A stretch of DNA of 63,688 nt, counting the filler, from Octopus bimaculoides (lineage: Eukaryota): the NCBI RefSeq assembly GCF_001194135.2. It is 4 parts of 3 records of this genome, joined end to end, with 100 filler letters (N's around TTAATTAATTAA, not from the genome) between each part and the next. Parts side by side here need not be neighbours in the genome. Positions count along the whole stretch, not along the records: positions 43,499 to 63,688 come from NC_069003.1; 3 more parts are not named here. One strand, 5' to 3'. Below the pieces are notes generated by a model, which was not told the origin of the DNA, ran no database searches, and was given only the letters and a program-made list of their open reading frames with translations. Each line of letters opens with the position of its first letter. Position 1 is the first letter of the stretch. Below, one piece after another: positions 43,556 through 61,946 of the stretch. Made by a program: the position numbers and the translations under genes.

Positions 43556-43735
43556 TTAATGACAGCCAGACTCAGGCTGCGGGAAACGGAACTCAGCAAT
43601 CGACTCTAATGCACTTAGACGCCTCATTCCATTTCTGAGATGCTCCTCCTCTTCTTGTGACTTTGCTTGTCTGTTGTGTTCTTTTAAATTTAAACAGATG
43701 TCACAGCCATCCTCGTATAAACAATTGCTCAGATT
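43556..43735 (-). CDS. NB-ARC-TPR gene terminal coding exon J (phase 0, stop TAA)
   Basis: Acceptor ttatacttgcag; NLSNCLYEDGCDICLNLKEHNRQAKSQEEEEHLRNGMRRLSALESIAEFRFPQPESGCH*. Confidence 0.8.
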   Translation of the reverse strand, partial: NLSNCLYEDGCDICLNLKEHNRQAKSQEEEEHLRNGMRRLSALESIAEFRFPQPESGCH

Positions 43736-43880
43736 CTGCAAGTATAATACAATAGAACATGTAGTATAGAACAATGGAACATGTAGTAATTTCAGTTTAA
43801 TATTTGAGAGATGAGGAATTATGTACATTATTTACATTATTTACATTTTACAGATATTTCTCCTCATCTTGATTGTTGTT

Positions 43881-43926
43881 AGCATAACGTTTCAGCTGAT
43901 GTACTCTCCAGCCTTCATCAGGTGTC
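43881..43926 (-). ncRNA. Minimal type-I hammerhead motif, same family as 29821, in the last intron of the host gene
   Basis: GACAC-CUGAUGA-A-GGCUG/loop/CAGCU-GAAA-CG-UU-AUGCU; core intact, stem I has 2 mismatches. Confidence 0.7.
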
Positions 43927-43954
43927 CTGGGAGAATTAGCAAACAAGCTTTCCC

Positions 43955-44270
43955 CATTCACTACACCAGCAGTGCGCTTTCGAGACGCACGCTTAAGTTC
44001 TTCATGCCGAATACGTGCTCTCTCAAAAGTGTCGAACCCCTCCTTTAATCTGCTTCCTCCATCTGTGGCGATGACAGGCATTGCTCTCCCAGTCAGTCTC
44101 CTGCATATCACAGGCCTTTAATAAGGACTTGACACAGTCCTTAAATTGCAGCCTTGGTTTCTGCCGAGGTCTCTTTCCATTCACAAGTTCCCCATATAGC
44201 ATCTGCTTAGGAATCCTGCTATCTTTCATTCTAATAGGGTTTCCAGTCCAATGTAACCAGTTCTTGTACA
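43955..44270 (-). mobile_element. RTE (BovB-like) LINE 3' end
   Basis: WTGNPIRMKDSRIPKQMLYGELVNGKRPRQKPRLQFKDCVK...WRKQIKGGV. Confidence 0.9.
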
Positions 44271-44840
44271 TACAAGCATATACACACATGCATACACTCA
44301 TAGATACATACATACACATCTCAGGGGGAACTTTCTAGGTGCAATCCCATGGTCATTATAGATAGGTATATAATAATAAGATTAAGTAAGACCCTGATAC
44401 TTAATTACATACGTTTATACATATATTTATATATACATATATACACACATATTATGCATATATACACAAATATATATATATATATATATATATATATATA
44501 TATATATATATATATATACATATATATATATATCAAAATTAATTTACGAAGGTGTCATTAATTCTATTATTATCCAATGTAACTATTTTAAGAATAATAA
44601 TAGCAGAATCAATGACACAGGCGACACCAGAGTATTTTGGACGATTTAATAGCGAATTTTGATTGTTATTTCAAGCAGGTAGACATGCTTAGTATGTCCT
44701 ATGCAAATATACATATTTGCATACACACACACACATATATTATATATATCCATACACATGCTTACATGATAATGGACAGACAAATAGACAGAGAAACAAA
44801 AGGGCTTAACAAAAAATTGTAATTTGTTACAAACACTGAC

Positions 44841-45075
44841 CTCCAGGTGGTTCTTGACTGTGGTTTTGCGGGAATTGTCGCAGGGATGGTTTAATTCTTC
44901 CAAATTCTTGCCGCACTCTTCGAATTTCTTTTTGGCTAAGTATTTTTGCTCATTAATCAGGTAACTATGTGCCAGCCATTCCTGGATATCCACCAAGATA
45001 TAATGAACCGAACCAGACTTTATCATATCATGCTCTGCTTTCTCCAATATATCTATAGCTACTGATAAATTTCCA
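44841..45075 (-). CDS. NB-ARC-TPR gene exon I (phase 2-0), TPR-like
   Basis: Acceptor tttttattatttctag, donor gtcagt; GNLSVAIDILEKAEHDMIKSGSVHYILVDIQEWLAHSYLINEQKYLAKKKFEECGKNLEELNHPCDNSRKTTVKNHLE. Confidence 0.85.
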
Positions 45076-45960
45076 CTAGAAATAATAAAAAATAAAACAT
45101 GAAAACAATATATGTAAACCATTGCAGCGTGGAAGGTGTTTATAAGCCATTTAAGAAACACACAAAAACCGTTAGATTCACTTCAACATTTAAATTTAAT
45201 TTGCCAAAAATATCTCTGACTGAAAATATCATACATGCATGGGGTTACGATTCTATGCATCCAACAAAGTATTATCATTAAGCTGAAACTGTTGCTAAAG
45301 TAAAAACAAACGGAATGGTGAAACTGTTTTTTCGTTTTCTGAAAAAGCAACGTTTTGGACTTACAACCCTTTTGCATAATAGCAACGATTTGTTTCGAGT
45401 GGTTTTCAGTAAAAATATAACTGATATTTAACACTCAATACGTATTCATACATATGCATACACACACACACACACACACACACACACACACACATATATA
45501 TATATGCGTGTGTGTGTGTGTGTGTGTGTGTGTGTGTGTGTGTGTGTGTGTGTGATAGAAAGAGAAAACTATGCATTATTGTCTAAGTAACCTTTCATGG
45601 GTGTCTAGAGGTAGAAAAATAACAGAATGCATGAAATACACACAAACCTAGGGTACACGGATTCATAAATCATTTAATTAAGGTTGTATTATATGTGTCT
45701 CAGTTATTAATTAATTATGGATGATTTGTAGGAAAATTTGTTGTAAAAAGAGAAAATTAATTGCAAAAACAAGAAAAGAAAATGTTTTCTCAAAATGGAA
45801 ACTTCATCAGTTTACCTACCAAAGTAATTTCTTTAAAATGAGTTTTCTAGTTTACAGTTTGTTTGTGTGACTCATTTATGGCGAAATTTCCGACAACAAA
45901 TTTTCCAATGGCAAAAATATTCACAGCAAATTTTCTGGACATGCTTAAACACACATTTCC

Positions 45961-60037: not shown

Positions 60038-60140
60038 ATATAAGAAATGATATCAGATATATAAGAAATGATATCAGATATATAAAAATGATATCAGATA
60101 TATAAGAAATGATATCAGATATATAAGAAATGATATCAGA
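60038..60140. repeat. 21-bp minisatellite x5 (atataagaaatgatatcagat)
   Basis: Directly visible; each unit has the palindrome TGATATCA; the third unit lacks one base. Confidence 0.95.
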
Positions 60141-60152
60141 CTAAATAATTAC

Positions 60153-60306
60153 CTGGATGCTTAATAAGGGACTGACCAATCTTGTATTGAAGGAAAGCTT
60201 GTTCTTCTTTAGAGCCGAACAGGAGAGACATATCGTAGCAGCATTGGTAAAAGTTGACTGCTCTTTTAGGATGCAGAGAAATAATCTTACCAGCTTTCTC
60301 ACAGAG
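60153..60306 (-). CDS. NB-ARC-TPR gene exon B (phase 0-1), TPR-like
   Basis: Acceptor ctctctaaacag, donor gtaatt; LCEKAGKIISLHPKRAVNFYQCCYDMSLLFGSKEEQAFLQYKIGQSLIKHP(G); phase matches exon A. Confidence 0.85.
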
Positions 60307-60361
60307 CTGTTTAGAGAGTAACAAAAAGAGAGTAGACATCACATGAAGCAGCAACAATGAT

Positions 60362-60892
60362 AAGAGCAAGTAGTAGTAAAGTCCTGGGGGTGCAATTCAC
60401 CCAACCAAAGTTGTTGAAGGTGGTGCCCCAGTATGGCCATAGTCTAATAGCTGAAACAAATAAAGAGTTAAAAATAAAAGGTAATAGGTGCAGGAGTAGT
60501 TGTGTGGTAAGAAGCTTGCTTACCAACCACATGGTTCCAAGTTCAGTCCCACTGCATTGTACCTTGGGCAAGTGTCTTCTACTATAGCTTCAGGCCAACT
60601 GAAGCCTTGTGAGTGGATTTGGTAGACAGAAACTGAAAGAAGTCTGTCGTGTATGCATATGTGTGTGTGTGTATGTGTGTGTGTGTGTCTGCATTTGCCT
60701 CCCCACCATCACTTGACAACTGATGTTGGTGTGTTTAAGTTCCCGTAACTTAGCGGTTCAACAAAAGTGACCGATAAAATAAGTACTGGGCTTACAGAAA
60801 ATAAGTTCCGGGGTCGATTTGTTTGACTAAGAAGGTGGTGCTCCAGCATGGCCACAGTCAAATGACTGAAATAAATAAAAGAATAAAAGAAT
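60362..60892 (+). mobile_element. SINE family 1: a 3' end (60362-60480) plus a full copy (60485-60892) filling the exon A-B intron
   Basis: Same consensus. Confidence 0.85.
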
Positions 60893-60926
60893 CTAAAACT
60901 AGAGGAAAAGTAAGAAGATTACTTAC

Positions 60927-61946
60927 ATCATAAAGGTTTTGAAAATACAAACGATCCCCATATGCACTGTGAAGCACTTTGCCAAACAAGTCTTGAATTG
61001 TCTGTTGTTGGTCAGCGAGAAGATTCTGTACCTGTTGAAATTTTTGGTCCCGGAAATAGCTTGCGGCCGTTAGAAATATTTCCCCAGTGATCTGAGTAAA
61101 ATACAAATGTGCACAGCATGATGACCTCACACTGTAGAATGACCGGTTGACTGGCAATTGTGATGACCGGTTGACTGGCAATTGTGATGACCGGTTGACT
61201 GGCAATTGTGACGATTGGTTGTAAGCTTGTCTGATGATTGGTTGTAAGCTGTAAGTTTGGTCTTCATTTTCAATAAGTAATCCTGATTTCTTGATGAAAT
61301 GACTCGGATTTTCTAAGTAGCCGTTTTCGCTGTGGTTAATCCATTCAGCTACGAATTGAAGATAGTTGTACGAGAACTGGACATCTGAACAAGATAGTGT
61401 GGCCAGTAATTTCTTAACAGGTTGTGATGTACTATTTAACATACCGTTAATACATTTGAAATATTCATCTGGAATTTCAAATTTTTCGAAGCAATCTTCA
61501 ATACCTTTTTGGTTAGGGAAAAGTGACAACATTTCAGCAAGTTTGAGTATCATTCCAGGGAATCCACAACACCGATCAAGAAGGGAATTAATCAACCTCT
61601 TACAGCTAGAAGTCACATTTGATGAGAACTCACAGTTAAAGAGTTCTCTCGCTTTTGATTTCCCTAAAGGCAACACCTGGAACTCTTTTGTACAAAGTTC
61701 ATTGGTCAATAATGGTTTAAGTCCTCGAAACACCACAATAAAAGTGGTCTCTGGAAAAGTGATACTGGAATTTTCCATGAACTCGAGTTTTTCAGATTTT
61801 TCAGTGTTTGATAAAGCATCAAAGTGATCGAAAACAATGATATTTCCCCGATTTAGTTTCCTGAGATTTTGGTGATCAGCACAATTTGTTTTACAACAAA
61901 AATATTGAACTTCTCTCGATGTCTTCGTCTTGACTTCCTTCAGAAC
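60927..61946 (-). CDS. NB-ARC/STAND NTPase-TPR gene, exon A (340 aa, phase 0-0): NTPase C-terminal half, helical domain and winged helix
   Basis: Acceptor ttgtttaatttcag ends at 61947 and donor gtaagt starts at 60926; the 1020-nt exon is open. Translation VLKEVKTK...RGNIIVFDHFD (Walker B)...TFIVVFR (sensor-1)...FQVLPLGKSKARELF...LLDRCCGFPGMILKLAEML (GxP)...TYSLQPIIRQ (MHD-like)...FQNLYD. This extends track ORF 60858..61778 upstream by 56 codons. Confidence 0.85.
61141..61212 (-). repeat. In-frame 24-nt tandem repeat x3 inside exon A (SSQLPVNR)3
   Basis: gaccggttgactggcaattgtgat x3 on the plus strand. Confidence 0.95.

Follow-up and report, generated by a model that had tools for sequence, protein, structure and literature searches.

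We analyzed a 63,688-nucleotide stretch of Octopus bimaculoides DNA (filler letters included; hereafter the window) and focused on a minus-strand gene in its last piece, positions 43499-63688. This gene probably encodes a divergent protein in which an NB-ARC-type STAND module is joined to TPR repeats, with at least ten exons and a product of about 780 amino acids. The visible part of the gene begins at a splice acceptor (tttcag/GTTCTGAAG, first exon base 61946) and ends with a TAA stop codon at 43556, exactly the outer limits given in a first-pass annotation made from the sequence alone. The piece has a G+C content of 35.5% and is identical, gaps included, to Octopus bimaculoides chromosome CM046623.1 (GCA_001194135.2) near 34.87 Mb, which bears out the cephalopod source proposed by that annotation. 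NCBI places two neighbouring same-strand models at the locus, XP_014782971.1 (LOC106878300) and XP_014782976.1 (LOC106878306), both described as "uncharacterized"; UniProt names the latter 'MalT-like TPR region domain-containing protein'.

Nine exons, here called A to I (Table 1), are visible, each with a canonical AG acceptor and GT donor except that the acceptor of exon C lies in an assembly gap. The reading frame of exon A is open upstream of the NCBI start codon (61778) as far as the acceptor at 61946. At its own locus, the homologous gene of Argonauta hians has exons of 900 (+12 to the acceptor), 154, 148, 110, 114, 138, 112, 232, and 177 nucleotides. Lengths are thus identical in the two species for exons B and D to G, nearly so for exons H (235 versus 232) and I (180 versus 177), and the phases agree exon by exon. 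Ten exons and a product of about 710 amino acids had originally been claimed; the nine visible exons are backed by the NCBI models and the matching Argonauta lengths, and their 2164 nucleotides of coding sequence give about 720 codons. The phase chain proposed with them stood for exons A and B, the end of C, exons D and E, and the last two exons, whereas the proposed exons 'F 1-2' and 'G 2-1' are a single 138-nucleotide exon of phase 1-1 (54537-54400).

Relatives of exon A are few. An exhaustive phmmer search with exon A against 1.84 billion cluster representatives returned three true family members: the octopus model, a 694-amino acid Argonauta hians protein (P0004, GAB1610064.1; E 9e-25), and a 387-amino acid open reading frame (P0005; E 5e-7) on a 305-kb contig of ENA assembly ERZ21867824. 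A fourth match, the unrelated repeat protein P0006, aligned only to a tandem repeat within exon A (SSQLPVNR) and was discarded as spurious. Nothing beyond the octopus models and P0005 came from word-indexed homologue searches, one of them run with the family profile. As judged from these sequences, the family is tiny and fast-evolving.

Below, the octopus, P0005, and Argonauta loci are referred to as L001, L002 (contig ctg121405l, 128152-149315), and L003. The L002 contig had been gene-called as if prokaryotic; its G+C content is 33%, its introns are of the GT-AG type, and it contains (TA)n and (CA)n microsatellites. The contig is probably host DNA, from another mollusc or cephalopod; as none of its repeats recur at the two octopod loci, we do not call it a cephalopod. 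A tblastn search identified no TPR exons within 10 kb downstream of the L002 open reading frame.

Exon A had been proposed to carry five NB-ARC-like motifs in a defined order, and we found all five at their expected places: a Walker B-like strand, a sensor-1 or RNBS-B-like strand, an RNBS-C-like motif, a GLPL-like motif, and the tripeptide LQP at the MHD position. Three of these (FIVVFR, VLPLGKSKARELF, and CCGFPGMI) are ordered and in register with At5g66900, MLA13, Sr35, and Apaf-1. The strand TFIVVFRG aligns to 'KILVTSR' of At5g66900, the RNBS-C-like motif VLPLGKSKARELF to 'LKPLEDDDARALL' (At5g66900), 'MEPLSVDDSRMLF' (MLA13), and 'LGKEKGLEIL' (Apaf-1), and CCGFPGMI to 'CNGFPIVI' (At5g66900), 'CGGVPLAI' (MLA13), and 'CKGSPLVV' (Apaf-1). 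Because nine residues are invariant in the three family members (D40, F73, P93, L102, F103, C126, G128, P130, and P236), the motifs exceed chance.

Other motif residues vary within the family. The Walker B D40 is invariant, and the acidic position after it is a histidine in octopus, with DD in Argonauta and DC in L002. The sensor-1 arginine is kept in Argonauta and is a glutamine in L002. At the MHD position the three members read LQP (octopus), MLP (Argonauta), and QVP (L002), with the proline alone conserved; the proposed position of this motif was right, while its histidine is absent from all three members. Exon A opens with 'VLKEV' at 61946, and the homologous acceptors open 'VLKEM' in Argonauta and 'VCQEI' in L002.

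Consistent with the prediction that the Walker A motif lies on an upstream exon, both relatives have an intact GxxxxGKT exon there. In L002 this exon lies 7.5 kb upstream of the exon A equivalent and reads ATG-'MAFIGRHDEREQIKELLISTDFQVLQIYGLPSTGKTDLIRQ'/GTGAGT; it is preceded by a strong polypyrimidine acceptor, and an in-frame TGA stands between acceptor and ATG in the same exon. The Argonauta counterpart, 'MSVELFLKHHAVSVNGVYTAIQCQHISLIQLYGLGYVGKTELWKQ'/GTGAGG (3' end '...LIQLYGLGYVGKTELWKQ/GTGAGG'), is found 2.95 kb upstream. The Walker A sequences of the two relatives are GLPSTGKT and GLGYVGKT. Both P-loop exons end in phase 0 and so fit the phase-0 acceptors homologous to 61946 (those of 'VCQEI' and 'VLKEM').

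From these relatives, we infer that the octopus Walker A exon lies in an assembly gap or upstream of the window, the exon itself not being in the sequenced stretches. The 9.8 kb upstream of exon A include unread runs of 607, 2493, and 1171 bases, with the 2493-N gap 1.7-4.2 kb from the acceptor. At the Argonauta spacing, the octopus P-loop exon would fall in this 2493-N gap, beyond the window end. The ATG in the relatives' P-loop exons lies 27-31 residues before the Walker A glycine. An N-terminal effector domain, which had been expected upstream, is not supported by these sequences, because the relatives start about 30 amino acids before the P-loop and L002 has an in-frame stop just upstream.

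Two further features of the Argonauta locus concern this region. The GAB1610064.1 model starts four codons inside its exon A and omits the P-loop exon. The intron after the Argonauta P-loop exon contains a 166-bp tandem array (L003 7466-7995; 3.2 copies, 95% match) that holds three extra copies of the 3' end and donor of the P-loop exon ('LYGLGYVGKTELWKQ/GT'), each preceded by a stop codon. These copies are potential decoy donors or a potential exon-duplication hotspot.

Sequence comparisons place the module closest to NB-ARC. For the joined N-terminal half of the Argonauta protein, NB-ARC (PF00931; gathering threshold 23.5 bits) was the top Pfam family; its match (E 7.9e-5, 22.5 bits) runs from Walker B to GLPL and takes in positions 99-204 of the 248 in the profile. 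Over its P-loop region, the joined L002 protein matched ATPase_2 (3e-7), NB-ARC (3e-4, 20.4 bits), and AAA_16 (4e-4). When a three-sequence family profile was compared with the PDB, four of the six best matches were plant NLR NB-ARC domains (At5g66900, MLA13, CNL9, and Sr35), in register from Walker B/RNBS-B through RNBS-C to GLPL. In an hhalign comparison of the family with a single Apaf-1 NB-ARC sequence (human residues 105-449, checked to be 100% identical to 1z6t_A), the RNBS-C to GLPL segment was aligned (P 0.009, probability 4%).

Structure prediction points the same way. A single-sequence AlphaFold2 (AF2) model of exon A was uninformative (predicted local distance difference test score, pLDDT, of 35). 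With the three-sequence alignment, mean pLDDT rose to 57 (65-80 over residues 90-245), and the model has the three-part fold anticipated for the module: beta-alpha-beta, helical bundle, and winged helix, with strands at IIVFD and FIVVF and a hairpin before LQP. In a Foldseek search of the PDB, ranks 1-4 were NB-ARC resistosomes (NRC4, 4.4e-5; wheat G10; NRC2 twice), and further NB-ARC matches included Roq1, CED-4, Sr35, RPP1, and WRR4A; from NRC4 to RPP1 these matches have probability 1.00 and E 4e-5 to 2e-3. Archaeal ATPase_2 proteins and Cdc6/Orc1 ranked lower than NB-ARC and RuvB, and no NACHT protein was among the top 50.

Because the Argonauta Pfam match, the PDB profile, the Apaf-1 alignment, the Foldseek ranking, and the relatives' P-loop exon converge, these sequence and model comparisons support the proposal that exon A encodes the Walker B-to-winged-helix part of a very divergent NB-ARC-type STAND module. 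Each line is marginal alone; together they make such a module clearly the best reading.

Downstream of the winged helix, the exon A linker carries a perfect in-frame tandem repeat encoding SSQLPVNR (Tandem Repeats Finder: 61139-61211, 100% match). The repeat is absent from the Argonauta protein, where it corresponds to a 20-residue alignment gap, and pLDDT there is 25-32. It looks like a recent expansion.

The C-terminal half had been predicted to consist of TPRs. Pfam returned sub-threshold matches of the octopus sequence to TPR_2, TPR_10, TPR_12, and TPR_MalT (E 6e-5 to 5e-3), with TPR_2 at 23.2 bits against a cut-off of 27 and TPR_10 at 22.6 against 27.5; the TPR_2, TPR_10, and TPR_12 match spans the exon E/F junction. 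The Argonauta counterpart exceeds the thresholds for TPR_12 (50.7 versus 30.1 bits), TPR_8, and TPR_2. Consistent with this, a two-sequence C-terminal profile matched the OGT TPR domain, kinesin light chains, and designed CTPR proteins in the PDB. These sequence matches support the TPR assignment. NCBIfam and PADLOC searches gave no significant family match, bacterial STAND and Avs families included.

The tail that follows the TPR region is divergent apart from a CD(I/L)C..L(K/R)(E/D)HN motif shared by octopus exon I and residues 650-670 of GAB1610064.1. This Cys/His motif has no Pfam match.

The two NCBI models belong together. GAB1610064.1 is a single protein colinear with both: its residues 55-347 are matched by exons A and B (E 1e-41) and its residues 370-667 by exons C to I (E 2e-61, 36% identity). 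Between the two local alignments lie 22 residues (348-369), about 18 of which (352-369) match the stretch of exon C that falls within the 507-N gap. Because the Argonauta exon has 148 nucleotides and 101 are visible in octopus, the gap hides only the acceptor and about 47 nucleotides of exon C. Since one Argonauta protein is colinear with both models and exon lengths and phases match, we conclude from sequence comparison that XP_014782971 and XP_014782976 are the halves of one gene split by the gap at 58982-59488, in agreement with the single spliced gene first proposed. The 26-nucleotide terminal exon of the first model (59972-59997, VFEGALLN*) and the start codons of both models (61764-61778 and 58881-58921) have no counterpart in the Argonauta gene. 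All three features most likely arose as modelling errors around the 507-N gap and the absent 5' exon.

Several observations weigh against an NB-ARC-type STAND protein. On octopus exon A alone, Pfam gave no relevant match at E<=10 (matches to COX6B and P5-ATPase at E about 0.1 were noise), and the Argonauta relative is 1 bit below the NB-ARC gathering score. A phmmer search of exon A against the PDB gave no meaningful sequence match (steroid-receptor and DEAD-box matches of exon A and P0005 at E 0.2-0.5 were spurious). With three family members among the cluster representatives, the profile is thin, and its PDB matches have E-values of 0.05-0.5. The structural model is moderately confident, Foldseek TM-scores are 0.2-0.35, and RuvB is interleaved with NB-ARC. 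None of the three members has the MHD histidine, octopus carries a histidine in place of the second Walker B acidic residue, and Walker A and Walker B of the relatives stand close together, about 40-55 residues apart. The relatives' exons were joined by consensus sites and phase. Finally, no GxxxxGK[ST] exon was found, by motif or by tblastn with the L002 exon, in the sequenced parts up to 9.8 kb upstream, where 4.3 kb are N.

These observations bear on four alternatives. The NCBI annotation could be right as it stands, with one gene for a 343-amino acid protein whose last exon is the mini-exon at 59997-59972 and a second for a 309-amino acid TPR protein starting at 58921; both halves exist as Gnomon models, and the mini-exon has an AG acceptor and yields a stop. 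However, the single Argonauta protein spans both models colinearly with the same exon lengths, the break between them coincides with the 507-N gap, and the frame of the '309-amino acid' model is open upstream of its ATG right to the gap edge. In addition, the '343-amino acid' model begins at an internal methionine downstream of the conserved Walker B strand, and we regard two separate genes as barely credible. Still less probability attaches to the idea that the motifs are a chance likeness and that exon A encodes an unrelated helical protein. Such a protein would fit with the lack of a Pfam match to exon A alone and the pLDDT of 35 in the single-sequence model, but not with the agreement of four independent lines (PDB profile, Pfam, hhalign, and Foldseek) on NB-ARC or with a STAND-type P-loop exon upstream in two relatives. 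A placement of the module outside the NB-ARC clade is also very unlikely; in that case it would be a winged-helix AAA+ domain like that of RuvB or Cdc6/Orc1, not of STAND type, linked to TPRs. RuvB structures do occupy Foldseek ranks 5th-10th (E 2e-4 to 9e-4), Cdc6/Orc1 appears as well, and the L002 P-loop exon scores ATPase_2 above NB-ARC. Yet NB-ARC takes ranks 1-4 (TMq about 0.3 versus 0.2, probability 1.00) and is the top Pfam family over the Walker B-GLPL region, the GxP and RNBS-C-like motifs are in register with plant NLRs and Apaf-1, and a winged helix followed by a C-terminal repeat sensor is the STAND architecture.

The remaining alternative, a degenerate STAND relic, accepts the module as a structure but not as a nucleotide switch: the P-loop exon was perhaps lost in octopus, and the protein would serve as a TPR scaffold. 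We consider this unlikely. It would account for the missing Walker A exon in every sequenced upstream stretch, for D-H in place of D-D at Walker B, for the MHD histidine absent from three of three members and the sensor-1 arginine not conserved in L002, and for a divergence so extreme that Pfam fails on exon A. Against it, the GxxxxGKT exon is intact with consensus donors in both relatives, D40, G128, and P130 are invariant, and all nine octopus exons keep an open frame, undamaged splice sites, and conserved lengths. Moreover, a large part of the upstream region is unread (607, 2493, and 1171 N), so absence of the P-loop exon cannot be concluded.

For the preferred NB-ARC-type STAND-TPR protein, a mode of action can be proposed on the basis of the established behaviour of STAND NTPases such as Apaf-1/CED-4, plant NLRs, and MalT (for MalT, see PMC4381067). 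The predicted domain order is a short N-terminus, the NB-ARC-type module, a disordered repeat linker, a helical/TPR solenoid of about 350 amino acids, and a short Cys/His-containing tail, and the first coding exon would carry the Walker A motif. By analogy, the resting protein would be an ADP-bound closed monomer with its repeat arm folded against the nucleotide-binding module. Binding of a ligand to the TPR solenoid would open the protein, and with exchange of ADP for ATP the nucleotide-binding, helical, and winged-helix modules would form a ring. Because no effector domain appears to be fused, output would come through partners recruited by the oligomer, the ~30-amino acid N-terminus, or the C-terminal tail. 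Since Walker B reads D-H and no member keeps the MHD histidine, nucleotide hydrolysis and the ADP lock may be altered or even lost.

By analogy with these systems, a role in immunity or cell death is a possible hypothesis. It is conceivable but doubtful that these proteins are cephalopod-restricted, fast-evolving, effector-less NB-ARC-TPR receptors that act as genuine intracellular immune or death sensors, signalling via a partner, the ~30-amino acid N-terminal peptide, or the CDxC...HN tail. If so, it would be the first NB-ARC-type sensor on record for cephalopods, and the missing MHD histidine would imply a different mechanism of autoinhibition.

Table 1. Window positions of the octopus gene, its motifs, the NCBI models, and the runs of N in piece 43499-63688.
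Feature	Position	Strand	Details
Exon A	60927..61946	minus	1020 nt, phase 0-0; starts just past the P-loop helix; predicted nucleotide-binding domain, ARC1-like helical domain, ARC2-like winged helix, repeat linker, first repeat-region helices
Walker B-like strand IIVFDHFD	61841-61818	minus	beta strand E36-40 in AF2 model
Sensor-1 / RNBS-B-like strand TFIVVFRG	61745-61722	minus	strand E68-72 in AF2 model
RNBS-C-like VLPLGKSKARELF	61676-61638	minus	
GLPL-like CCGFPGMI	61571-61548	minus	C126, G128, P130 invariant
MHD-position tripeptide LQP	61247-61239	minus	after winged-helix beta hairpin E224-226/E232-234, before helix 236-247
24-bp x3 in-frame tandem repeat	61139..61214	minus	SSQLPVNR x3, perfect; exon A linker after winged helix
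Exon B	60153..60306	minus	154 nt, phase 0-1; Argonauta exon of same length and phase
Exon C, visible 3' part	58881..58981	minus	101 nt, ends in phase 2; TPR-like hairpin, the first that Pfam detects
Exon D	57534..57643	minus	110 nt, phase 2-1; TPR region
Exon E	54850..54963	minus	114 nt, phase 1-1; TPR region, conserved HPTFGI..ST.AWS stretch
Exon F	54400..54537	minus	138 nt, phase 1-1; TPR region, invariant LEKNRW.VPMCYIADL block
Exon G	53353..53464	minus	112 nt, phase 1-2; TPR region
Exon H	44841..45075	minus	235 nt, phase 2-0; last TPR-like helices; also in older model P0002
Exon I	43556..43735	minus	180 nt, phase 0 to stop TAA; C-terminal tail
XP_014782971.1 / LOC106878300	61778-60927, 60306-60153, 59997-59972	minus	343 aa; last exon 26 nt, terminal
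XP_014782976.1 / LOC106878306	58921-58881, 57643-57534, 54963-54850, 54537-54400, 53464-53353, 45075-44841, 43735-43556	minus	309 aa
Assembly gap	62428..63034		607 N; upstream of exon A; one possible site of the missing P-loop exon
Assembly gap	58982..59488		507 N; separates the two NCBI models exactly; hides the acceptor and ~47 nt at the 5' end of exon C
Gap	57006-57015		10 N; intronic, coding sequence untouched
Gap	46856-46865		10 N; intronic, coding sequence untouched

Other features of the locus lie in introns and flanking sequence. An older UniProt model, A0A0L8G9R3 (P0002), wrongly draws its first 'exons' from intronic repeat-like sequence. Interspersed repeats of ~90-160 bp occur in the window at ~62150-62310, ~60550-60650, and 50497-50887, and they match several sites of the Argonauta locus at 71-93% identity (for example, L001 9470-9630 and 11130-11226 versus L003); they are probably an octopod-wide element resembling a short interspersed nuclear element. 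The only long repeats within the piece are microsatellites. The last intron (43851-44334, minus strand) contains two open reading frames, of 103 and 89 amino acids, in overlapping frames ('...GKRPRQKPRLQFKDCVK...' and '...ERARIRHEELKRASRKR...'). A likeness to the C-terminal tails of invertebrate non-long-terminal-repeat retrotransposon proteins suggested that these (44334-44026 and 44117-43851) might be retrotransposon remnants, but Pfam found nothing in them.

These results suggest a correction of the public annotation, in which two 'uncharacterized' octopus proteins would become one STAND NTPase-TPR gene and the P-loop exon is missing from the Argonauta model. They also suggest that a cephalopod NB-ARC-type module can be too divergent for Pfam, in which case surveys of mollusc NLR-like genes by domain counts would miss it. 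When bona fide NLRs were surveyed in molluscs, NACHT-LRR genes alone were counted (PMC3879445), and we found nothing specific in the literature on cephalopod NLR or NB-ARC proteins. If the protein is a sensor, it would be an intracellular STAND receptor for cephalopod innate immunity and a natural variant without an MHD histidine or a fused effector; if not, it would be an ordinary lineage-specific member of a well-known architecture.

The nucleotide-binding module most resembles the NB-ARC (PF00931) of Apaf-1, CED-4, Dark, and plant NLRs, with which the octopus family shares the order of strands and motifs, the P-loop being seen in the relatives. The likeness extends to the hhhhD strand, a sensor-1 strand with an arginine, the RNBS-C-like L.PL....A..LF, GxP, and a winged helix with a beta hairpin. 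Unlike canonical NB-ARC, the octopus family falls below the Pfam threshold, its MHD histidine is replaced, the segment from Walker A to Walker B is short, and the second Walker B aspartate is a histidine in octopus. In contrast to Apaf-1, CED-4, and plant NLRs, the family is also without a CARD, TIR, CC, or RPW8 domain, and its repeats are TPRs rather than WD40 or LRR. Pfam matched neither CARD nor WD40 in the octopus C-terminal half, Argonauta, or the joined L002 protein, and it matched no LRR family in the C-terminal half of octopus or Argonauta, where the repeats are of TPR type only. The labels 'NLR' in the strict sense and 'Apaf-like', both used in the first-pass annotation, therefore do not hold for the whole protein, as it has no LRR and neither CARD nor WD40.

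NB-ARC/STAND proteins with TPRs are also common in fungi and bacteria. The fungal and bacterial NB-ARC-TPR STAND proteins and MalT pair the same nucleotide switch with a TPR-like sensor arm, and TPR_MalT (PF17874) matches the C-terminal half weakly (E 0.005 in octopus and 6e-5 in Argonauta; 16.6-22.9 bits versus a cut-off of 45); unlike MalT, the octopus protein has no DNA-binding or other output domain. Among animals, the NB-ARC/NACHT-TPR proteins of cnidarians (Hydra, Acropora) have the same STAND and TPR layout, many of them in lineage-specific families, and Hydra viridissima has 103 genes that combine nucleotide-binding and TPR domains (PMC7642931). The cnidarian genes are detected by Pfam, form large expansions, and often carry DEATH, DED, or TIR domains, whereas the octopus family comprises three cluster representatives with no recognisable effector domain and has no sequence match to the cnidarian proteins at E<=0.001. 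The sensor architecture is thus already known, and the octopus gene is a very divergent addition to it: not strictly an NLR, and Apaf-like only in its nucleotide-binding module.

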